The position numbers and the translations under genes are program-made. This document shows positions 7,966 through 64,000 of a stretch of DNA of 64,000 bases, piece after piece. The notes under the pieces were generated by a model that searched no databases, was not told the DNA's origin, and saw nothing but the letters and a program-made list of their open reading frames with translations. The stretch lies in sequence record OR805295.1. The stretch is one strand, 5' to 3'. Numbering within the stretch: position 1 is the stretch's first letter; the number at the start of each line of letters is the position of its first letter.

Positions 7966-8700
7966 TTTTGAAATTTTAGTCATTATAGTATTATATAAAT
8001 CATAAGCACGTTTGATTATACGTTTATATGCTCTGGGGTTTTCATTTTTAAGAAACATAATATAATTTATGTGTGCATTTTCTATAAATGCATTTATAAA
8101 TTCTTCTTTTGTTAAGACAGTTCCTTTTTTGTATAAAAAACTAAATTGATCTACAGTTTGTTCTAAAGCTTGACTTATTCTTGCATTTATTTCGTATGAT
8201 TGTCTATAATATGTATCTGAAGATGCCGGATCGTATCTTTTTATTTTTTCTTTCTTAAACGGTTGTCCTTTATTTTTATCTAGTGCATGCCTTAACTCGT
8301 GTACTATAGTTGAGACTACACTCTTGTTATTACTAAAAGAATTACCATAATAATGGGTATAAACATATATCGTATTAGATACTAAGTTGTATTCTCCTTT
8401 CTTTGCACCGTGTTGTCCAGAAATGTCAAACACTACCTGAATATCTTTAAATTCATTGTATAAATCATCGAATATATCATCAGGAATTATATTTTTTAAA
8501 ACAACACTATAGGTATTTAACATTATTTCTATAGTAGGCCAATCGTACTTTTTCAACAACAATTGATCTTCTATTTCTTCTCTGTGTTGTTTCAAATTGT
8601 TGAAATATGATACGGCGTTTGCTACACACATTTTCGCAATATTTTGAATAATCAGTTCTTCGTCTGAAGTTTCGATTAAATTAATTTCGTTTAGTCGCAC
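7948..8700 (-). CDS. Zincin-like metallopeptidase, putative head-internal protein
   Basis: HELRHALD...YEINARI; 10-aa leader MRLNEINLIE. Confidence 0.75.
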   Translation of the reverse strand: MRLNEINLIETSDEELIIQNIAKMCVANAVSYFNNLKQHREEIEDQLLLKKYDWPTIEIMLNTYSVVLKNIIPDDIFDDLYNEFKDIQVVFDISGQHGAKKGEYNLVSNTIYVYTHYYGNSFSNNKSVVSTIVHELRHALDKNKGQPFKKEKIKRYDPASSDTYYRQSYEINARISQALEQTVDQFSFLYKKGTVLTKEEFINAFIENAHINYIMFLKNENPRAYKRIIKRAYDLYNTIMTKISKNKTGA

Positions 8701-9370
8701 GATTTTCTGCCCTTTTCTTTAATGTAACATACAATTCGTAACATCTAGATACTATTCGTTTCCATACTTTTGGATTTTCTTTCTTTAAGTATGTAAGCTG
8801 ATGACCTTTTGCGAATTTTTCTATATTATCTAGAAACCATTCTTTGGATGGTATTTCTTTTGAAGATCCCCAATACTGCAAAAATATAACCTTAAGATCA
8901 TTTAATAATTCGGCTATTCTTGCATTTATTTCGTATTTTTGATTTAAATATTCTTTATGTTTATCTGAATTGTTTGTATGTTTATATAATAATGGATTAC
9001 CCTTAGAACTATCTAATGCATGTTGTAATTCATGAACTAAGGTATTTGTGTATGTTATATCATTTTTATATGAATCCGGACCTATATCAAAAAGTGCTAT
9101 GAGATTTTTGCCATCAGTTCTTTGAATAAAAGCACCGTTGTATTGTTCTGGATGCTCACTTGCATACGGACGTATTATTAAATCGGAAATATTATTTAAA
9201 ATAGGATACTTATCGAAATATTCTTGTTTTATTAAATCTTTTAGTTTGTATGAATTGTATATTTTATTTTCTGCATTCTTTTCTATAACAAACCATATTA
9301 TTTTTGCAATAGTAGATAATATTATACTTTCGCTTGCCTTTTCCGTTAGATTAAATTCTAAAATTTTCAT
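8681..9370 (-). CDS. Zincin-like metallopeptidase, paralog of 7948-8700
   Basis: HELQHALD...YEINARI; leader MKILEFNLTE; shared KxENPxxxKRI. Confidence 0.75.
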   Translation of the reverse strand: MKILEFNLTEKASESIILSTIAKIIWFVIEKNAENKIYNSYKLKDLIKQEYFDKYPILNNISDLIIRPYASEHPEQYNGAFIQRTDGKNLIALFDIGPDSYKNDITYTNTLVHELQHALDSSKGNPLLYKHTNNSDKHKEYLNQKYEINARIAELLNDLKVIFLQYWGSSKEIPSKEWFLDNIEKFAKGHQLTYLKKENPKVWKRIVSRCYELYVTLKKRAENRATKRN

Positions 9371-12185: not shown

Positions 12186-12622
12186 TTTATTTAATACGAT
12201 ACTAGACTATATACGGTATTCTTTTGTATGATATACAATGACAGTTGGGAATTTAAATGCTTTTTACAGTTGCTGCAAAGCATGCAAAATAACGCATACG
12301 TAAACAGCACAAAACACGCGCATAATGCGTTGTTTGTGTGCTTTGTGTATACTGCACTAGCATGCAAACTAGCATGCAAAATAACGCATTTTTGCAGCTA
12401 TAACGCTAGGGGTACGCATTCCTACAAATATAATAATTTGCTAGAATGATGTATATTTTTAAATTCTAAATTTAACCTATCCTATAATATACATTACGGA
12501 AATGTTACAATTAAAAATTTTATTATCTCAGACTTTATGCACATTCAATCTTATAATACTATATTAAATACAAATATATTTATTGATTTGCAAGTAACAT
12601 TTAACAAACGGAGTATATTTTA

Positions 12623-14832: not shown

Positions 14833-14909
14833 CCCTCGGTAGCTCAGTTGGTTAGAGCGCGCGACTCATAATCGCTAGGTCACTGGTTCGAATCCAGTTC
14901 GAGGGACCA
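14833..14909 (+). tRNA. tRNA-CAU, Ile2-like (or elongator Met), copy 1
   Basis: Cloverleaf, anticodon CAT, GCGACTCATAATCGC arm as in Ile2, CCA end. Confidence 0.9.
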
Positions 14910-14931: not shown

Positions 14932-15016
14932 GCCCGAGTGGTGAAATTGGTAGACACAGGAGACTTAAAATCTCCCGCTTCGCAGCGTACCGGTTCGAGT
15001 CCGGTCTCGGGTACCA
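14932..15016 (+). tRNA. tRNA-Leu(UAA), copy 1
   Basis: GGAGA-CT-TAA-AA-TCTCC, long variable arm, CCA. Confidence 0.95.
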
Positions 15017-15313: not shown

Positions 15314-15390
15314 GGGACTTTAGCTCAGTTGGTTAGAGCGCGCGACTCATAATCGCTAGGTCACTGGTTCGAATCCAGTAAGTCCCACCA
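15314..15390 (+). tRNA. tRNA-CAU, Ile2-like (or elongator Met), copy 2
   Basis: Body identical to copy 1, different acceptor stem, CCA. Confidence 0.9.
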
Positions 15391-15440: not shown

Positions 15441-15525
15441 GCCCGGTTGGTGAAATCGGTAGACACAGGAGACTTAAAATCTCCCGACGAAAGTCGTGCC
15501 AGTTCGAGTCTGGCACCGGGCACCA
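15441..15525 (+). tRNA. tRNA-Leu(UAA), copy 2
   Basis: GGAGA-CT-TAA-AA-TCTCC, CCA. Confidence 0.95.
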
Positions 15526-17439: not shown

Positions 17440-17516
17440 CGCAGGGTATGCAAGAGGTCTAAGCAGAAAGGCTCATAACCTTTTTATCGTGGGTTCGAAT
17501 CCCACCCCTGCAACCA
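17440..17516 (+). tRNA. Initiator tRNA-fMet(CAU)
   Basis: C1:A72 mismatch, purine11:pyrimidine24, CAT anticodon, CCA. Confidence 0.88.
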
Positions 17517-24346: not shown

Positions 24347-24389
24347 AAAATGCGTTATTTTGCACGTTTGCATTATGCTATACGCAAGT

Positions 24390-24418
24390 TTGCAATAACG
24401 TGCAAACGCATGTATAAC
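24390..24418 (+). promoter_or_regulatory. sigma70 promoter upstream of tilS unit
   Basis: TTGCAA-17-TATAAC. Confidence 0.7.
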
Positions 24419-24651
24419 GCTAATACAGCTAACAATACAGTGCATAAAAACATGTACAGCATACTAGCGTTACAACGCATATCGTTGAACTATAAATGTA
24501 TATATATCTGGAGCAATATGGTATTCTTGTCAGTCACTACTGATGATACCTTAACTACATATCATATATATAGAAAAAGTTTAAGAACTGGTTTAGAATC
24601 GTGTAATTTTTCTTATGTACTTGGATTAGTTATGAAGGAAGGATATTAGGT

Positions 24652-25263
24652 TTGATTAAGTTAGTAAAACCCATTGCATATTATGGACAGAAATTTGGTA
24701 TCGCTGTTTCGGGCGGTATTGATTCTATGGTTGCATTGTCCTTCTTAAAGAAATATCCACAAAATAACTTCGATGTCTTTCATGTAAACCACGGATCGGA
24801 GTATGATATCAAAGCAGAGCAATTTGTGAGAGATTATTGCAGCGACAATAAAATAAATTGCCATGTATACTGCATTAACACAAAAAAACCAAAAGGTTGT
24901 AGTTGGGAAGAACATTGGCGAAACGAACGATATAAATTTCTTCACTCTCATGAATTAGAAATCATGACTGCACATACACTAGACGACAACGTAGAGACGT
25001 GGTTGTTTTATAGTATGCACGGTTCGCCTCGTATCATTCCGTATCGGAAAAAAAATGTCATCCGACCGTTTATGCTTACTACAAAAAACGAATTTAAAAA
25101 ATATGCGAAAAGTAATGGTGTACAATGGTTAGAAGATCCTAGTAACCGAGACACCAATTTTAATAGAAATCAAATTCGACATAATATAATTCCTCAAGCA
25201 CTTAAAGTAAATCCAGGATTGTTTAAAGTGATTGCAAAAAAAGTAAGAGAAGAGAATGAATAA
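24652..25263 (+). CDS. tilS: tRNA(Ile)-lysidine synthetase, catalytic domain only
   Basis: AVSGGIDS PP-loop, HVNHG, RNERYKFL, TAHTLDDNVET, RP, EDPSN, RNQIRH. Confidence 0.88.
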   Translation: MIKLVKPIAYYGQKFGIAVSGGIDSMVALSFLKKYPQNNFDVFHVNHGSEYDIKAEQFVRDYCSDNKINCHVYCINTKKPKGCSWEEHWRNERYKFLHSHELEIMTAHTLDDNVETWLFYSMHGSPRIIPYRKKNVIRPFMLTTKNEFKKYAKSNGVQWLEDPSNRDTNFNRNQIRHNIIPQALKVNPGLFKVIAKKVREENE

Positions 25264-25371: not shown

Positions 25372-27445
25372 ATGAATACTATAATAACGCTAAGTGCTTT
25401 GCAGGAAACAATACAAAGAGACGAATGGTCAGACCGCTATCATTTTGTTATTAAAGATAGGTATGGTAGTGATATATTGTATTGTATAGAATACGAAAAT
25501 TCATTACAGTCGTGGTTTATAGACTATACATATAACAATAGTTTGATATACTTAGATATATTTAAAATTCAGCTATTAACACAAAAAATATCATCTTATA
25601 CTAGTAACAGAACAGTAGTATTATTATCAGACAGTATCTCGAATGTAATTTTATATTACGAAATAGCAAATGATAGTATTAGTAGTAAAAATTATTCATC
25701 CGAAATAGTATTAACATAACTGAATGTATTTTAGTATAAGACCATAACGCACCCATTTGCATTTAAATTCCAAACTAAAACTATAACCTCTTTATGTATA
25801 TTCTTATTATTGCAATTCTAGTAAAATCTGTACAACTATTACTGAGTTAGATGTACAGGACAAAGAACAGCAAAATGCTTGACTATCCATTCGTGTTAGG
25901 TTAATTTAACAAAATTATATAAGGTATTTTAAGTGTTTATCATTAAATTACAAAGCAATTGTGACAAAATAGAAATAGATAACTCAAAATACAATTACGG
26001 GTTTTTTATTGTTAACTCAGAAAACATGAAAGTATTCCATTACAGTAACAAAGAATCGTCTTTGTATTCTATGTTTGCAAAAAATCTACATATCAATGTA
26101 TTTTTGGTGTCTACCTTGTGTTGTATTATATGTTTCGACTATCCTACTTTATACTTAGAAATGGAATCAAACCGTGCAGTAGCATTAGGTATAAATCCAT
26201 GTTTCTTAAATATAGATGTACAAGGTTCTCGGTTCCATAATTGGGATCCGATGTGTTTTGTATAAACATGTGATATAATTTGTGTTTAGTCATTTCTTAA
26301 ATAAGGTATCGAAATGAAAGAAAACAATATACTAGAAATGCAAGCAGGATGCTCAAACGTGGCTGTTATAGGTAACAGTGTTATAAGTATAGAAGGATTA
26401 TATGACAAACCAACAAAAACATTAAACTTTTTTGTAAGATATAATTTAAACCATGATTCAGAGTACTTATCATACATTTACACATTTAAAAATGATATAT
26501 GTGTACTGTCTTTATCTAGTAAATGTTTTATGATTAAAATAGCCCCAGAGGTGTATTATAAAACTAGATCTGTATGTATTATTAATAATATAGGAAGTGG
26601 ATTGTTATATAGTTACAAAAATCACACATGGGCTCGGACATGCGTTCTAATATAGAAAAAATTTATTATATTTCTAAAAATACACGAAGTATAAAGGTAA
26701 TGGACCATACAATCACTATATGGTCGTTATATATTTCACCTAATATTACTATAATTTTATGGGCAACTAATTTAACTACAGGATTATGTACCTTAAAATA
26801 TAAAAATGAATTCAAAATAGATTTATTTAAATTAGTCAATACAGTGTATTATATAGAAAACAAATATAGAAACAGCACATATGTATTAAATGATGTATTG
26901 CACAATACTATATGCTCTGTGGGTATATTAAGACCCCGTATTGCAGATGAAGTATATTGCAGATATAGAATATCGTATGTCAGCTAACATTACATATATT
27001 GTATCAATTACTGCTAGATGCACATCTATATATGAAGATGCGTATAGTGATTTCGTTATATTTTGTATAGCAGATGTATTTGGTAGTTATATAATTCAAT
27101 ATATGACAGAACGCAACAATAGGTTTATAGCTGTATATGAATATACATTTTCTACAATATGATATGTCTGATTCAAGTATATTATGCAATATAACAAGAT
27201 ATTCGTATACAATAAGACTGAGTCATTTTGTTATATCCGGAATGGGTAGGCCTATAACAAAAGTTGTATCCAGTATACTGTGTACTCCTATTCATATAAT
27301 AGATGTGTGTAATGTTTCGCATCGTGCAAGAGATACGATTTTTTCGTACAATGACACCCAATTACGCAGTTCTTTGCATTTGTTTTCTATATCATTTTGG
27401 AAGTTAAAAGCATATACTATGATAAACGTATCCTACATAATATGA
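25372..27445 (+). other. Tandem small ORFs, several of the ILxLQ family (25372-25719, 25933-26265, 26314-26655, 26628-26987)
   Basis: MFIIKLQSNCDKI, NILEMQAGCSNV, ITLSALQETI. Confidence 0.55.
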
Positions 27446-41908: not shown

Positions 41909-42316
41909 ATGCAACATACTCACATTCGTTTCTACAACGAAGAAACTCAACAGATCGATAACCGCCGTGGCGCTACTGTTGCCTGGGAAACCGCCGGCAA
42001 CAAGATCCGTATTTCCGTGGCAGCATGTTCGGAAATGGATAACTTCAACCGCAAGACCGGACGTGAACATGCTGCTAGCCGTCTCGAAAGCGGCGACTAC
42101 ATCGAGTTTAACGGCACCGAACTTCTCAATGCACAAATGTCTTCTGTAAGTCATGTGCAGTCTGAAGGTCTCGTTCGTGCTATGTGCTTCTTGCTAGCAC
42201 AAGGCAAAGGCGATCTGTATTACCCTGCAAGCGAAGGTCAGCTTCGCAGCGAAGCCGAGTGCAATAGCTACAACGCCCTCGAGTACCTGAAACACCAGAT
42301 GGGCATTCATCAGTAA
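41909..42316 (+). CDS. Hypothetical protein with host-like codon usage
   Basis: GATVAWE...VAACSEMDNFNRKTGR; GC-rich. Confidence 0.85.
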   Translation: MQHTHIRFYNEETQQIDNRRGATVAWETAGNKIRISVAACSEMDNFNRKTGREHAASRLESGDYIEFNGTELLNAQMSSVSHVQSEGLVRAMCFLLAQGKGDLYYPASEGQLRSEAECNSYNALEYLKHQMGIHQ

Positions 42317-42330
42317 GTATTCGGCCATTC

Positions 42331-42371
42331 GGAATTGCGATTTAGGTTTTGGAATTCTAAATCGCAATTCC
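42331..42371. repeat. Perfect 15-bp inverted repeat
   Basis: GGAATTGCGATTTAG-11-CTAAATCGCAATTCC. Confidence 0.85.
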
Positions 42372-42592
42372 GGTTTCCAAATTCAATTTTAGGCACAAAC
42401 TCGGATCCGCATTTGCATTTTGCATTTACATTTTGTGTTCTGAGTGTATATGCAAAATGCAATCGCGCATGTTGTCGATGCATTGGCTAATCTTTTATTT
42501 TTGATAGTTTAGAAAAGATTAAGAACAGAAACTATCTGTAAATTAATAAAAATAACATTTACATTACATACACATATGCATATACTATATAC

Positions 42593-42870
42593 AAGTTATG
42601 CGCTGTTGCATACGTAAATACCTCCTATGTTGTTTAGATATGTCGATTCTGGTATAACCAGATAGACCTAAGGATGATGCTAGTGATTCCTTAGTATTGT
42701 ATATTCTAGCTGAGTATAAAGAGTAAGGGGCTTTATACAAATAACAATTCCCTAGGCAAGATATACCGCTCCGTTGTGCTGACGAGCATAATTTGCCCAG
42801 ATACAGAGCACGTGACTGGTCTGAGGAGCATTTATATCAGAAAGGCAGACTTATGTTTGCCTTTCTTTTT
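42593..42870 (+). ncRNA. Candidate ~275 nt ncRNA
   Basis: TTTACA-17-TATACT (42558-42586) and terminator at 42839-42870; no convincing ORF. Confidence 0.55.
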
Positions 42871-42889
42871 GAGCAGATATTCTCTTATT

Positions 42890-42973
42890 CACTTCCTTAT
42901 TCATTTCCTTATTCATCTCTATTTCATTTGTCACTTCCTTATTCATTTCTTTATTCATCTCTATTTCATTTGT
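42890..42973. repeat. 2 x 42-bp pyrimidine-rich direct repeat
   Basis: CACTTCCTTATTCATTTC(C/T)TTATTCATCTCTATTTCATTTGT twice. Confidence 0.9.
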
Positions 42974-42980
42974 TATTGCA

Positions 42981-43092
42981 AATAAGACTAATTCTTATTT
43001 GCGTTTGTAATTTCATTTGTTATTGTAAATAAGACTAATTCGTATTTGCATTTGCAACGAAAAAGAATATGCAAATAATAACTAATCTTATT
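42981..43092. promoter_or_regulatory. Three Fur-box-like 19-mers
   Basis: AATAAGACTAATTCTTATT, AATAAGACTAATTCGTATT, AATAATAACTAATCTTATT. Confidence 0.65.
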
Positions 43093-43267
43093 TGCATTTG
43101 CACTGCCTATTATATGGATTGGTAGCATACTTGGAAATGGATAGTAAATAAGTAGTTGATTTGTTTATAAATTTTAATTCTATATCGTACTGATTGACCT
43201 TGCTATATATAGCTCGCGCGCGTATACAAGATGGTAAAAAATAATTTAAAAATATTTTAAAAAATGC

Positions 43268-43391
43268 TTGACTTTCCATTACTACGACCTTAAAGTGCGA
43301 ACTGTAGACGCAGTGTGTAGAGCGCTACATAGTAAGCAACGCAGAAAGTAAACAAAAAATGCTTGACGCAATGCAAACTAGGCTCTACACT
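43268..43391 (+). promoter_or_regulatory. Two tandem sigma70 promoters
   Basis: TTGACT-17-TAAAGT and TTGACG-17-TACACT, each with A-tract UP element. Confidence 0.85.
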
Positions 43392-43474
43392 GTATACAAG
43401 CTTAAGGGGTAGGTGCCCCGAAAGTGTAGTAAGTAAACAACATAATCCTTCCATCAGCTACAGAGGTATACAAC

Positions 43475-44179
43475 ATGTCCGTACATATCACTCGTCAACG
43501 TACCGACAAACAACACGTCCTGGCACTGGCAATCAACGGCGTGGTCATCGGCCAGACTATGGCCACTTACACCACCCCGAGCAAGCGCACCTGGTCGGCG
43601 ACCGCCGAAGTCGAACTGGCAGACGGCACAGTCGTACAGTTCGAGCAGAAAGAAGTGTTCAGCGCGATCCGCATCACCCGCGAAATCGAGCAGGCGCTCG
43701 ACGGCAAGGAACTGGCGGCCAAGTACACCCCGGAACCGAAAGTTCCCGGGCAGAAGGGTCCGAAACCGCTCACCGACGAAAGCCGGCTCAGCAACGCGAT
43801 CGCGATCGTCAAGGCGGCCATCACCCACACCGGCTTCGACGAAGCTACCCTGGTGTTCGACGGGGTCGACAAGGCCAACTTCGAGCAGAACAGCACTTCC
43901 GTCGGCAACAAGCTGCGTCGCCTGGGCTTCGTCTTCGAACTCGGCGCCGGCAAGGCGAACAGCGGCAAGGGCTTCCTGATCAACCGCAAAGCGCAGGCCG
44001 AGGCAGAAGCTGCCGAACGCAAGGCCAAGCGCGATGCCGAGAAGAAGGAACGCGAAGAAAAAGCAGCGGCTGCCAAGCGCGAAGCTGACGAACGCAAGGC
44101 CAAGCGTGAAGCCGAACGCGCCGAAAAGGTCGCTGAAAAGAACGCAGCGATCGCTGGCGCAGCGCAGGAAAGCAAGTAA
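43475..44179 (+). CDS. Early protein with Ala/Lys/Glu-rich tail; paralog of 61748
   Basis: INGVVIGQ...FSAIRI domain; GC-rich codons; AGAGG RBS. Confidence 0.9.
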   Translation: MSVHITRQRTDKQHVLALAINGVVIGQTMATYTTPSKRTWSATAEVELADGTVVQFEQKEVFSAIRITREIEQALDGKELAAKYTPEPKVPGQKGPKPLTDESRLSNAIAIVKAAITHTGFDEATLVFDGVDKANFEQNSTSVGNKLRRLGFVFELGAGKANSGKGFLINRKAQAEAEAAERKAKRDAEKKEREEKAAAAKREADERKAKREAERAEKVAEKNAAIAGAAQESK

Positions 44180-44194
44180 TTGCCCAACTGCGCC

Positions 44195-44223
44195 GAAAGG
44201 GGGAGCTATTGCTCCCCCTTTCT
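44195..44223. terminator. Intrinsic terminator
   Basis: GAAAGGGGGAGC-tatt-GCTCCCCCTTTTC. Confidence 0.85.
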
Positions 44224-45158
44224 TCATGACCACACAATCTGTATACTACTATGTCTTTAACTATATTTTCTATATCAGCTAATTTGTATACAATAATTTG
44301 GTATTCTGCGCAAGTGACACAATGCTGTTATATAGACATAATAACACGCGACACTAATATTTTTATAACCTATCCATTTTATAATAACATATTTGTATCT
44401 AAAATTAGTTCTAATACAACACTTTAAGGAAAATATGAACACTATATTAGAGATAAGTAGTGGAATAAGAAATGACTATATAACAGTCAATAATTTTACA
44501 TATGACTACTATCTAGAGGTAAACACACCTGCGTTTTCTTTAATGATAATTATTCCGACAGTTCCTATATTAGACAATACTTGCATTACTTTTATAAAAA
44601 AGTATTAATATGAATATATTCTTTATATCAAACGGTCTATCTAATATAATATATCACAAAGATAATTTGATACAACATGATATACATATGATAGATATTG
44701 AGATTAATAATTCTACTGTTATTTGGCTTACATATTCTTTCAATATTCCTAAGGTATCATTTAAATATATTATCTAATTCATTTTCTTATTGTATGAATT
44801 GCAATTGCAAATTACTCTTATTTGTAAATGCATATAAACAATCAGTTGCTATTAAAAGTATTTGCTGTTAATATATTATATAACAGTGCAATTGATATTT
44901 TAAAATACAGTGTGCAATACATCTTACATGTATTAAAATTTGTGTGTTACTTGTTTTGCATTAATGATTAATATACCTCTCATACAGTACAAAACTCATA
45001 CTATAAACAATTTGTTCGGGCGATCGTTCTCAAAATGTATACAAGTGCGAGATGACAATCTAATTTTACTTGTTAGTTTTTATATAGAAGGTTCTAAATA
45101 TAGAAAATTTGTATATAACAACCAATGCCTTGCCAATGCCTTGAAGGGATTTTAGTAT

Positions 45159-49980: not shown

Positions 49981-52287
49981 ATGAGAGAAGAGTTTGAAGC
50001 CGCGATCTTCGCGGAAGTGAATAAACAGCGCGCCGCCGAAGGTGAATTTGTCCTTCAGCATCCAGAGGGGCTATTTGCCCGCGATGACGATGGTTCCTAC
50101 TTGATCCGCTGGGTCAAGAGCGCATGGTGGGCCTGGAAAGCCAGTCGTGTGGCACTGACGCCCCGGACGCCCGATGTGTGCAGCGAGTGCAATGACACCG
50201 GGAAAGTCTATGACGAAAGCGGCGCCGGTCCGTGGAGTTGCTACGCCTGTACCGATAACCCGGAGGTGATCGGCTACGCAAACGGCGATGAGTTGGACAA
50301 CATGCTGGATGACCGCACTGCTGTTCTCTCTCCAAGGAAGACCAGTTTTCACACCGTGCCAGTGTATCGACTGATCCACACCCAAAACAAAAGTTTTCAA
50401 TAAAATCGATATGGAACTGGTCCTTCAAGAAGCCGAAATTGAGGTAGTGAAATGAGCAGACTGACCGCTGAACAAGCCCGTGACATAGCGCGAGCGAAAG
50501 ACGATGTCGATGCCATCCTCAACGACATCGCCAAGGCAGCCGCAGAAGGAAAGTACGTGTACACTACCCGCGCCTATGGGTTCGGTACAGGCGGCGGACG
50601 GCGCAGCGACGCGATCCTCAAAGTGTTGCGTAGCCTCGGCTACGACTGTGCGGTGCATGCTGAGGGACGCCAGTCTGTTGACCTGTGGCTTGAAGTGAAA
50701 TGGGGAGACAAGCCATGACTAACAACCCCGGAGATTCAAAAATGATCGTAGAAAACGCCAAGCAAGCCGCCGAAGACTTCAAAACTTCCATGGCTAAGAT
50801 TTTTCCGAATTACATCGCCAGGGCGTCGGTTTCCGATAACCTTGGTCCGGCGATGACAATTTCGTTTGCGAATGTCGGTTGCGCTTCCGAAGCCCCTAAC
50901 AGCATTCTGATAAATGCGAGCGGTTACATGCGCTTTATGATGCATTTGTGTGACAATTGCGGGAATGTATTGCCAGAAGGTTCGCCGGTAGAAATTGAGC
51001 TGCTAATGTGGTCTATCCCCTATCGTTCGGAAGTAATCAAGTTCCGCAAGATCAAGGGCAAGACACCAGCCGAAGCTATGCAAAAGCTAGTCAAGTGGTT
51101 TGAAAAAACGCCGAAGCTATCCGGGGTCTGTAATGGTCTCCACGTAGGACACGCAGAATGAACATTGTGTTGGACAAATTGCTGTTTGGCGGTTTCATCG
51201 ACCAGCACCGCAATGAACTTGCCCAGCAACAACTGAATCGGTTGTTTGCCAAGTACGGTGAGCCGAAGATTGGTATCACACGGGCATGCTTTCTATCTAA
51301 GCATTACGTCCTGAAGTTCCCGATTAATGACAGGGGTGAGCGGTGCAACGATTGGGAAGGTAGCTGTTCCGGCAGCTATTTGGCACGCGGACGCTGGCTA
51401 GAAATCGGAGGCTTCATTTGCGTCATGCAAGAGCGTTTGGTTGAAGTGGATTGGAAGAACAACACCCATGCAAACTTTCCTGATTGGGTAGGCAGCATAG
51501 ATTGTGGTCAAGTCGGCTACGATAAACATGGCGTTCTGAAAGCGTATGACTTCGGGTGAAGCATGACCATCAATTTGTTTGTTGTCAACATAAAGAACGA
51601 ACCTATCCCAACCGACCACAAGTCGATACTCCGCTATCTTGGCCTTAGCCTGCACACGCAAGGCCGTCGTGTATCTGCCAAATTCAGCAGCGGTAAGTTG
51701 AAGCTGAACAACTACAACATCGAATTTTTTCACATGGCGGAGATGATTCCATGACCGACACCAACAAAATAAAAAAGCTAGCAAAACTGGACGAGATCGA
51801 CAGGCTCAGGGCAGAGCGAGACGCCGCCCTGGCCAGGGTCGTAGAGCTGGAACGCGGCAAGGTCTACGTCGAAGCCCGGCAATGCGACGAGTGCCAGCAT
51901 AGCGGGATCAACGATTCCGCCACGGGCGTGGCTGCCTGCCACGAATGCGACTGGACCGGACCAGAGCCAGAAGAGGATAAGTGCCCCGGTTGCCAGAGGG
52001 AGAATTGCATGGCCGCAGCCTGCCCGCAGTGTGGTGCCCGATATGTCCTTGTTGCCAGCGAAGAGATAGCCGCCCCTGTAGCCCAGGCTCAGCACAGCGT
52101 ACCAGAGGAATGGCGCGACATGCTGGCCGAGCTGCAATGGCATTACGAGCCGTATGACGATCACCACCACACGCCCCAGGGCTTTTACTGCCCGCGTTGT
52201 GGGAGAGAACAGGACGAAGGACACAAGCCGGGATGCAAGATAGCCGAGTTGCTCGCCACTGTCGACCTCAAAGAAGACAAGAAATAA
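49981..52287 (+). other. GC-rich gene island (49981, 50452, 50715, 51158, 51563, 51751)
   Basis: Abrupt rise in GC; overlapping co-directional ORFs; 51751 has several CxxC motifs. Confidence 0.85.
51158..51559 (+). CDS. Minimal protein-kinase-like protein
   Basis: GITR...YVLKFP...NDWE...SIDCGQVG...YDFG. Confidence 0.45.
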   Translation: MNIVLDKLLFGGFIDQHRNELAQQQLNRLFAKYGEPKIGITRACFLSKHYVLKFPINDRGERCNDWEGSCSGSYLARGRWLEIGGFICVMQERLVEVDWKNNTHANFPDWVGSIDCGQVGYDKHGVLKAYDFG

Positions 52288-61747: not shown

Positions 61748-62215
61748 ATGTCTAATGTAAGCATCCCTGCAGTAACGGTAGAGAACATCGGCACCCTGCG
61801 CATCGTGCGCACCGCTAACAAGGAGGTCGGAAGTGTGCTCGACCTAAAAGTTAACGGGGTAGTAGTAGGGCAAGCTTTCCCGCTCTACAGCACAAAAACC
61901 CAGCGTAGCTGGAACGCGAGCATGCACGCTACCGTTAACGGTGTAGAGGTGCAGTTTGCACAGGAAGGCGTGTTCAGTGCAATCCGCATTGCACGGGCGT
62001 TCGAGGATGCAGTAAAGTATGCCGTTAGCAACGGCGAACAAGGGCAACCCCTCCCCGCGCCGGCGGCGCAGACCGATGCCCCGGCAACGGCAGAAGCGCA
62101 AGCAGAAGCCCCGGCGGCGCAGACCGAGGATGCGCCGGAGACCCCGGCGGCCGAAGCTAAGCCCGCCCGCAAAGGCGGCAGCAAAGGCAGCAGCAAAGGC
62201 GGCAGCAAAAAGTAA
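61748..62215 (+). CDS. Early protein with Ala/Pro/Lys-rich tail; paralog of 43475
   Basis: VNGVVVGQ...FSAIRI domain. Confidence 0.9.
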   Translation: MSNVSIPAVTVENIGTLRIVRTANKEVGSVLDLKVNGVVVGQAFPLYSTKTQRSWNASMHATVNGVEVQFAQEGVFSAIRIARAFEDAVKYAVSNGEQGQPLPAPAAQTDAPATAEAQAEAPAAQTEDAPETPAAEAKPARKGGSKGSSKGGSKK

Positions 62216-62228
62216 GCGCTGCTAACAC

Positions 62229-62254
62229 AGGAAAGGGGCAACTGCCCCTTTCCT
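62229..62254. terminator. Intrinsic terminator
   Basis: AGGAAAGGGGC-aact-GCCCCTTTCCT; exact reverse complement at 62947-62972. Confidence 0.85.
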
Positions 62255-62383
62255 TTTATGTCCTAGTTGTAAATGCAAATTAATCTTATTTGCATTTGCA
62301 CAAGTCAATCTCCTGTTGCATTACTGCGGCAAGATGTTAGTATGTGCTTGGCAGTAACACATAACTAGCAGGAGCAACAGACA

Positions 62384-63480
62384 ATGGCTAAAGTATTGCA
62401 TGTTAACAGCATCGGCAACATCGCCGAAGTGTTTACATCTGTAGACCTCGATAGCGCCTTGTTGCACGCAATCAAGCGCTGTGCAATGATGGGCAAGGTT
62501 AATGTTGTTGGTCCCAACGCTCCTGTGTTTGCTAGCCACTACGACGCACTGACAGCGTACGACGTGCAGTGGCGCCTTGTTCCACCAGGCTGCGGCGTTA
62601 CTTTGTACGTCATCGCCGAGGACAACAACTAAGGAGAGACACAATGAATCTCGTACATCTGTGGATCAACGGGCGTGTTGTGACTGCCCGCAAGGTTGTA
62701 AGTAAACACACTGTCCGCAATCCGAACAGTCCGATTGATATCGAGACTATCGACGTTGTTCGACTGCGTCTGCCCCGTGGTGTTCGTGCTAGCAGTTGGG
62801 CACTCCGTAAGGCAGTGTACCAGCTCATGGAGCAAAGCTGTAGCTGCTCGAGTGACTGTTGTGGACACTGGTTCGGCGGCGCACGCAAGATCTACATTAA
62901 AGGCAGAGACGTCAGTGTCGTTGCCGGGTACCAGCGCAATTACTAAAGGAAAGGGGCAGTTGCCCCCTTTCCTTTTATCCATTAATGTGCAAACGCGAAT
63001 TATTCTTATTTGCACAGGACAGTGAGATGCAAACAAGAGGCATTCTTGATGCAGTCGGGTGATAAGAATTGTTCACAAAAAGAAAAAGCTTGCGTTATGC
63101 TACACAGGTGCTAGTATGTGTATTGCAGTACCTATAAACATTAATAGCAGGATAAGAAAATGGTTGACTTTAAAGGTTTTAACTGGGACGCACTAGTCCC
63201 GGAGGACAACGTTTCCACAGTTTCCATTAAAAATCACTACGAGGAACTCCTACAAAGTTTTGTTGACAACGGCATAGACTATGTGTTAGTCCGGCTGTCC
63301 CAGGAACTGCCGCACTACGAGGATTCAGATTATCCCTGCTACAAATTGGTTGACAAGTATGCAGGATGGATAGTAGGCTGGGACTACTACGGATTTGTTG
63401 TGGAACGCATGGACACGCACCTTTTCTTTGACAACAGCACTGCAAAAGGTGTAATGGACTTCCTGGAAGCTAACGGCTAG
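62384..63480 (+). other. Early-type genes 62384-62632, 62644-62946, 63160-63480
   Basis: AGGAG/AGGA RBS, promoters TTGCAT-16-TAGTAT and TTGCGT-16-TAGTAT, terminators. Confidence 0.8.
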
Positions 63481-63710
63481 CACAAAAAGGAAGGGGCGCA
63501 AGCCCTTTTCTTTTGTCTGCAATTTCTGTGCAAATAAGAACTATTACAGTTGTGGTAAAAGCACAATGCAAATAAGACGCATTCTTGATTAGGCCTGATA
63601 ATAAGTTCTTATTAACAACAAAGAAACTGAATAAGAATAATTCTGAAAAAATAACCCTGCGGCGTAACACAAAGGGCTTGCAAATTGCAAGCCCTTTTTA
63701 ATATGCATTT

Positions 63711-63778
63711 GTTCTAAGATTAGTTCTTATTTGCAATGATAATATTCCCGCCTTACAAATAAGAACTAATCTTAGAAC
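63711..63778. repeat. Perfect 23-bp inverted repeat of Fur-box-like elements
   Basis: GTTCTAAGATTAGTTCTTATTTG-22-CAAATAAGAACTAATCTTAGAAC. Confidence 0.9.
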
Positions 63779-64000
63779 AAATATTCACTTGATTTTTCTC
63801 CCAATATAGTGTATGTCTATATTAGATAAGATTAAGTCTTGTTTGCTTGTTACACTTTATATGTTGCAATGCTAAGGCAATGACAATATTATATGTACAG
63901 CAACACAAAACAGGAGATATAACATGTCAGCAGAATTGAAGCGGTTGTTAGAGATTTTTCCAACCTTTAAATCATTCATTTATGCTGAAGGGGCATATGG

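Follow-up and report, generated by a model that had tools for sequence, protein, structure and literature searches.

We found that the window, by which we mean the whole stretch of 64,000 nucleotides analysed here (sequence record OR805295.1), encodes a small protein, mini-TilS, which is probably an active lysidine synthetase made up of the catalytic domain only, acting on phage tRNA-Ile2 and enabling the decoding of AUA codons. The window comes from a PA5oct-like Wroclawvirus, a very AT-rich jumbo phage (about 30% GC) of the GC-rich bacterium Pseudomonas aeruginosa, and this reading would provide a putative explanation for the translation of a 33% GC phage in a 66% GC host. If it works as canonical TilS does, mini-TilS would adenylate C2 of C34 with ATP and then transfer lysine, and the lysidine formed would turn the phage CAU tRNAs from Met-like tRNAs into tRNAs which accept isoleucine and read AUA. 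The domain content, conserved motifs, fold, family, cassette linkage and codon statistics reported below were observed directly; from them we infer the catalytic activity of mini-TilS, its choice of substrate and its mode of discrimination against tRNAMet.

Domain content and fold of mini-TilS

The gene lies on the forward strand at 24652–25263 and is an intact ORF of 203 amino acids encoding a stand-alone TilS N-terminal PP-loop catalytic domain. Its start codon is TTG, an assignment which is supported by a Shine-Dalgarno-like run (AAGGAAGG) 9–17 nt upstream and by the N-terminus MIKL, which agrees with the family consensus. The protein shares 99.5% identity with proteins of 11 P. aeruginosa jumbo phage records, including PA5oct, MIJ3, Callisto and Paride. 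In PA5oct the counterpart is EST35_0433, annotated as “tRNA(Ile)-lysidine synthetase”, and in MIJ3 it is tilS. Both genes have been commented on previously: the MIJ3 paper (2019) described a putative TilS as “not reported in phages” and suggested a role in host viability (PMC6892783), and the PA5oct study found tilS to be transcribed throughout infection (PMC7318152). Across these two papers the gene is presented as a putative “host-like” lysidine synthase.

Profile searches assigned the protein to TilS. Pfam PF01171 matched residues 15–178 (1.7e−36), and the NCBIfam equivalog-domain model TIGR02432 (“lysidine_TilS_N”) scored 131.4 bits against a cut-off of 93.6, with the match spanning the full profile (positions 2–189 of 189). 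The scores for TtuA (31 bits) and TtcA (21 bits) were far under their cut-offs of 450 and 272 respectively, which places mini-TilS outside the TtcA/TtuA-type thiolases, and PHROGs gave only weak matches to PAPS-reductase and QueC. The best solved relatives were the TilS proteins of A. aeolicus (residues 26–228 of 317), G. kaustophilus (22–219 of 464) and E. coli (16–200 of 433); these ranges mean that mini-TilS matches their N-terminal domains alone.

The predicted structure agreed with this. An AF2 model built with 43 relatives as input reached a pLDDT of 94.7 and a pTM of 0.90, and its best Foldseek match was TilS 2e21_A, the Aquifex protein, matched at its N-terminal domain (TMq 0.83, TMt 0.55). 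The top six matches were all TilS, with TMq values of 0.79–0.83 over 207–215 columns, and TtuA and TtcA ranked lower. The target-normalised TM values of these six (0.37–0.56) show that each target was covered in part only. The model has the TilS-type fold, with the helical subdomain following the Rossmann-like core.

Conserved residues of canonical TilS are also in place. The PP-loop motif SGGxDS is present as S20-G-G-I-D24-S25 and is invariant in both the mini family and canonical TilS, and further canonical residues are kept at R90, R93, Y94, H108, L110, D112, E115, R138, P139, D162, N165, R172 and R176. In total 19 positions, those of the PP-loop among them, reached 90% conservation or more in the mini family together with 70% identity or more in canonical TilS. 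Residues specific to the mini family were W89 (A in canonical TilS), W117 (Y) and H123 (R), which lie near conserved motifs, as well as F140 and K196.

What follows the catalytic domain in canonical enzymes is absent. The terminus of mini-TilS (residue 203) falls where canonical TilS enters the linker helix. The protein lies outside type II TilS, as no CTD1 (PF09179, the TilS substrate-binding domain) comes after the catalytic domain, and outside type I TilS, as it has neither CTD1 nor CTD2 (PF11734, TilS_C, the acceptor-stem reader). Using the PA5oct record as a stand-in genome for the phage of the window, we found no match to PF09179 or PF11734 at E ≤ 10 in the whole 286,783-bp genome, although control genomes matched. 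The original prediction had described the protein as the catalytic domain only, and this was borne out by the TIGR02432 match over the full profile, by the TilS N-terminal fold and by the lack of both C-terminal domains in the PA5oct genome. We also considered whether the C-terminal domains might be supplied in trans and rejected this, as both are absent from PA5oct, the ORFs flanking the gene (24350–24646 and 25372–25716) have no Pfam match and the commonest protein neighbour in relatives occurs at no more than 14 of 66 loci.

Mini-TilS thus differs from both known types. Type II TilS (A. aeolicus, PDB 1WY5/2E21/2E89; M. smegmatis; H. pylori) resembles it in having a PP-loop domain with the TilS helical subdomain and no CTD2, and the A. 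aeolicus protein is 29–30% identical to it (TMq 0.80–0.83). However, type II proteins exceed 300 amino acids and still have CTD1 (PF09179), the presumed reader of the anticodon stem and elbow. Type I TilS (E. coli MesJ/TilS, 1NI5; the G. kaustophilus-tRNA complex, 3A2K; the host enzyme PaTilS) shares the catalytic domain, the motifs and presumably the reaction, but has over 400 amino acids, carries both CTD1 and CTD2 and depends on the acceptor stem (PMC11947777). It should be noted that in canonical TilS the C-terminal domains also aid catalysis: a CTD2 deletion of the B. cenocepacia enzyme is weakly active and CTD1 substitutions reduce activity (PMC11947777). An isolated N-terminal domain could therefore be a poor enzyme.

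A clade of short, mostly viral TilS proteins

A word-based protein search returned 746 relatives of mini-TilS, of which the best 120 were all 179–253 amino acids long, with 43–55% identity. Scanning IMG/VR gave at least 501 confirmed viral stretches, and the best 80 of these encode ORFs of 197–228 amino acids. Species-representative genomes showed a sharp split by length: relatives with at least 38% identity had 198–253 amino acids, whereas those with 34% or less had 270–518 and were of type I or II. The short relatives in these genomes were found in MAGs of scattered taxonomy, suggesting that they are binned phage contigs.

In a tree of 105 dereplicated N-domains, 67 short proteins fell on one side of a single branch (SH-aLRT 99); this tree is unrooted, with no outgroup, and its canonical TilS proteins are few and biased to Bartonella and Erysipelothrix. 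As judged from these sequences, mini-TilS is a discrete, mostly viral clade of proteins of about 200 amino acids and no one-off truncation. Repeated independent truncations were rejected for the sampled sequences, given that the mini proteins all group together as one clan (SH-aLRT 99) in the unrooted tree. A Ralstonia jumbo phage, RsoM2USA, also encodes a TilS, but at 349 amino acids this is of type II size and is not a stand-alone catalytic domain (PMC8504454).

The conserved length bears on the idea that a bacterial tilS was captured and that mini-TilS is its inactive remnant. Roughly half to two-thirds of canonical TilS is indeed missing, as would be expected of a remnant. We nevertheless consider this extremely improbable, since the frame is intact, the fold is confident, all motifs are retained and a length of about 200 amino acids is conserved over hundreds of divergent relatives in one clade; transcription has also been reported in PA5oct (PMC7318152), and the genes of the family show a bias against AUA (see below).

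Within the phage collection searched, the PA5oct group was the sole cultured phage lineage with a member of the clade, which makes it the practical experimental model for mini-TilS. A large natural clade of catalytic-domain-only TilS proteins would make tRNA discrimination by TilS directly testable, and the enzyme together with its tRNA would offer a minimal pair with which AUA decoding could be engineered.

Some members of the clade were found in MAGs assigned to CPR bacteria. In the Spechtbacterales MAG G001 the mini form is the only TilS in an incomplete genome, and a copy with 68% identity and the same synteny (peptidase M16-dnaX-tilS-tRNA(CAU)) lies on a contig of another Spechtbacterales MAG. 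No TilS at all was found in 14 of 16 genomes of this order, which are incomplete MAGs, so that the Spechtbacterales gene was probably acquired along with its tRNA array. In an incomplete Saccharibacteria MAG the mini form is again the only TilS and lies at the very start of a contig. CPR bacteria were rejected as proof that the N-terminal domain suffices and are suggestive only, because 14 of the 16 order genomes lack TilS and the MAGs are incomplete.

Two contigs of the clade are described here as observations in their own right. On a Spechtbacterales MAG contig (L084, 6611–7800), mini-tilS is followed by eight tRNAs (CAU, CAU, UUU, UUC, UAC, UCU, GUU and CAA) and lies beside peptidase M16 and dnaX. 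The 428-kb contig BBPE01000624.1 (L002) encodes a mini-TilS of 253 amino acids at 8001–8891 with an adjoining tRNA(CAU); its other neighbours are split release-factor-like ORFs (PCRF/RF-1), a nucleoside deoxyribosyltransferase and an N6/N4 methyltransferase.

CAU tRNAs and the tilS-tRNA(CAU) cassette

Twelve tRNA genes were found in the window at 14.8–19.0 kb, and three of them have a CAU anticodon. The first two, both on the forward strand, were read as tRNA-Ile2: copy 1 (14833–14909), the likely substrate, has the acceptor stem CCCUCGG/UCGAGGG and A73, and copy 2 (15314–15390) has the acceptor stem GGGACUU/AAGUCCC. Positions 8–65 of the two copies are identical, forming a 58-nt core, while all seven acceptor-stem pairs differ. 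Their shared anticodon arm, CGCGA-CUCAUAA-UCGCU, is nearly that of E. coli tRNA-Ile(CAU), and in E. coli both copies matched best to a tRNA annotated by PGAP as tRNA-Ile, anticodon CAU (82.9% over 70 nt). Both bear the bacterial IleRS elements A73, U12-A23, C29-G41, A37 and A38 (as listed in PMC9976931), but C4-G69 is missing. Judging from these features, the two Ile2-like tRNAs in the window make a cognate tRNA-Ile2(CAU) substrate available to mini-TilS.

The third CAU tRNA (17440–17516, forward strand) is initiator-like and presumably no substrate. It has a C1xA72 mismatch, an odd D-arm and the anticodon stem AAAGG/CCUUU, in which A29-U41 is followed by just two G:C pairs, G30-C40 and G31-C39, before the loop, and it had no E. 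coli match at E ≤ 0.01.

The papers on PA5oct and MIJ3 label all three CAU tRNAs as tRNA-Met and mention neither the domain loss nor tRNA-Ile2 or AUA (PMC6892783, PMC7318152). Our reading re-labels two of the “tRNA-Met” genes of PA5oct and MIJ3 as tRNA-Ile2, which bears on the published remark that the tRNAs of PA5oct do not fully account for its codon bias (PMC7318152).

Each Ile2-like gene is part of a duplicated tRNA(CAU)/Leu pair. The two tRNA-Leu(UAA) copies (14932–15016 and 15441–15525) have diverged throughout while the CAU cores are identical, suggesting that the CAU core has been homogenised or is strongly constrained. In RNA-seq contigs covering the tRNA region (4 runs from one 2020 study) there was no consensus change at C34 (14867 and 15348), it being noted that such contigs cannot reveal starts, levels or modifications. 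The contigs break at 14868 and 15350, a k-mer artefact which a shared core of 58 nt would be expected to cause.

Among relatives, mini-tilS is closely linked to tRNA(CAU). A same-strand tRNA lay within 120 bp of the gene in 27 of 66 dereplicated loci, and 22 of these 27 tRNAs were CAU (binomial P = 1.2e−14, tested against the 14% which CAU makes up among all tRNAs of these loci), compared to 0 of 67 canonical tilS loci with such an adjoining tRNA. No protein-coding neighbour was conserved beyond a sub-clade. This leaves the presumed substrate as the one partner which is conserved with mini-TilS. A comparable arrangement is known from green-algal plastids, where a tilS-trnI(CAU) module keeps enzyme and tRNA together in a reduced genome (PMC13494906), although the TilS proteins there have about 370 to over 1100 amino acids.

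The loop CUCAUAA and A73 were common to all 29 distinct cassette tRNAs, and the C1xA72 mismatch was seen in none of them. Their anticodon stems and their acceptor strands each come in 23 versions, and no identity element common to them is visible beyond the CUCAUAA loop. A non-Watson-Crick 27:43 pair was present in 15 of the 29, compared to 10 of 29 other CAU tRNAs, which is not decisive.

The few mini-tilS loci which lie near other tRNAs (CAA, UUU and ACU) would fit a protein of the same fold with another chemistry or target, that is, a PP-loop enzyme which adds an amine other than lysine to C34 or acts on a different nucleotide or tRNA. The family-specific substitutions W89, W117 and H123 could, given their position beside conserved motifs, alter the chemistry, and lysine analogues are known to be taken by TilS as well (PMC11938285). 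We consider such a change very unlikely, however, as the protein scores over the curated TIGR02432 cut-off, its nearest solved structures are all TilS, ranking above TtuA and TtcA, and CAU tRNAs show a strong, specific association with its gene. In P. putida, lysidine occurs as its derivative ava2C (PMC11938285).

The two acceptor stems in the window raise the question of whether the host enzyme could serve the phage tRNAs. E. coli TilS depends on the acceptor pairs 4:69 and 5:68 and B. cenocepacia TilS on 3:70 (PMC11947777). Acceptance of both phage CAU tRNAs by the host type I TilS seems unlikely by analogy with these enzymes, because their acceptor stems are unrelated and the E. coli determinant C4-G69 is missing. 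Since mini-TilS has no domains which read the tRNA body and acceptor stem, its recognition would rest on the anticodon arm or on overall shape, and an acceptor-blind enzyme would fit twin substrates with an identical core and unrelated acceptor stems.

This bears on an alternative in which the phage tRNAs are adequately served by host TilS, and mini-TilS acts mainly to speed the modification of host tRNA-Ile2 or is redundant insurance. Other phages appear to manage in this way: tRNA-Ile2 genes are common in T4-like phages which have no TilS of their own (PMC1524935), and lysidine (k2C) has been found on a tRNA(CAU) encoded by a vibriophage, where it is apparently host-made (reviewed in PMC13191261). 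Like the phage of the window, these phages have their own CAU tRNA which needs lysidine for AUA (PMC1524935, PMC13191261), but they use host TilS, whereas phages of the mini-TilS clade bring the enzyme too, often as a two-gene cassette. In the window the two genes are not adjoining, with tilS 7–10 kb away from the tRNAs, as might be expected if the enzyme mainly served the host. We regard this alternative as unlikely, given that the host type I enzyme would, by analogy, hardly take both phage acceptor stems and that the tight cassettes in relatives argue for an enzyme and a tRNA which travel as a matched pair.

An enzyme which lacks both specificity domains, and whose cassette tRNAs show nothing conserved past the loop, might also be promiscuous. 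It would then lysidinylate host elongator tRNAMet, and perhaps the initiator, turning them into AUA-reading Ile tRNAs and lowering AUG decoding in the host, while the unusual stem of the phage initiator, where A29-U41 replaces the third G:C pair, would protect it. E. coli TilS does lysidinylate tRNAMet at a low level in vitro (PMC12514573). However, rejection of tRNAMet persists without acceptor contacts in type II TilS as found in nature and in a B. cenocepacia TilS engineered to lack CTD2 (PMC11947777), so that the loss of acceptor reading alone does not imply a loss of discrimination against Met. The phage itself requires AUG decoding (AUG makes up 18.5 per 1000 codons in the window), and gross mis-modification of tRNAMet is hard to square with the Spechtbacterales MAG in which mini-TilS is the sole TilS in a chromosomal synteny, a thin argument where 14 of 16 genomes of the order have no TilS. 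As to the escape of the initiator, A/U at 29-41 recurs in five initiator-like tRNAs, all from mini-TilS phage contigs (L005, L007, L008, L010 and L046), and a set of this composition gives no tie to TilS. Such reprogramming, which the original prediction had put forward together with the escape of the initiator, found no support here and is in our view decidedly unlikely. We place on the same level the proposal that mini-TilS reads the anticodon arm only, forms a portable two-gene AUA cassette with its tRNA and converts part of the host elongator tRNAMet to AUA readers, shifting decoding to the phage. The reading which we prefer remains that of an enzyme acting on phage tRNA-Ile2.

In the full-text literature searched, which leaves most subscription journals outside it, there was no description of a stand-alone TilS of about 200 amino acids or of a phage tilS-tRNA(CAU) cassette. 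The gene was thus already known as a putative TilS, and what would be new from the sequences is the one-domain architecture, the clade, the tRNA(CAU) cassette and the AUA avoidance described below.

Several other RNA genes were observed around mini-tilS. A tRNA-Ser with the unusual anticodon ACU (A34) recurs in one sub-clade (L011, L013, L015, L030, L039, L044, L047, L049 and L073); in L044 (10647–10736) it lies directly downstream and within about 45 bp of tilS, in place of a CAU tRNA. Genes for tmRNA were found a few kb from mini-tilS on eight uncultured phage contigs (L007, L008, L019, L023, L024, L037, L040 and L093). In L026, L027 and L032 there is a tRNA with a CUA anticodon at 12460–12533, 1.9 kb downstream of tilS, to which ARAGORN gives the name “Pyl”; this may be an amber suppressor and hint at TAG recoding.

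AUA codon usage

We counted codons in 63 non-overlapping ORFs of at least 100 amino acids in the window, a mechanical set which may include some non-genes. AUA made up 46.5 per 1000 codons, which makes it the third commonest codon and 52% of Ile codons. In P. aeruginosa AUA occurs at 0.9 per 1000 codons and is absent from highly expressed genes (PMC12514573), so that it is roughly 50-fold commoner in the window than in the host. The host enzyme is also slow: the type I PaTilS has a kobs/KM of 0.3 uM-1 min-1 compared to 5.0 uM-1 min-1 for E. coli TilS, about 17-fold lower (PMC12514573, Table 1). The phage would need lysidine because AUA is its main Ile codon, while its host has nearly none and a slow type I TilS.

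The tilS gene itself avoids AUA. In the window AUA accounts for 2 of its 15 Ile codons, compared to 52.5% elsewhere (P = 0.002), and in the family the AUA share was lower in tilS than in its neighbours at 61 of 65 loci (median 0.07 vs 0.28, Wilcoxon P = 2e−11), or at 58 of 63 loci when only ORFs of at least 200 amino acids were used. Such avoidance would be expected of an enzyme whose synthesis has to precede the efficient reading of AUA. The earlier suggestion that the protein makes lysidine on phage CAU tRNA for AUA decoding appears well supported, on comparative grounds, by the two Ile2-like tRNAs, the AUA excess, the cassette and the AUA avoidance.

The lowest AUA shares in the window were found in the ORFs at 50700, 51158, 53549 and 54475. 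Within a phage of about 30% GC, the window also contains GC-rich islands at 42001–44000 (GC 0.44), 50001–52000 (0.53) and 62001–64000 (0.46). A Pfam search of the ORFs at 43363–44085, 50700–51158, 51751–52284 and 61748–62212 gave no match, and at 43363–44233 long ORFs overlap on opposite strands.
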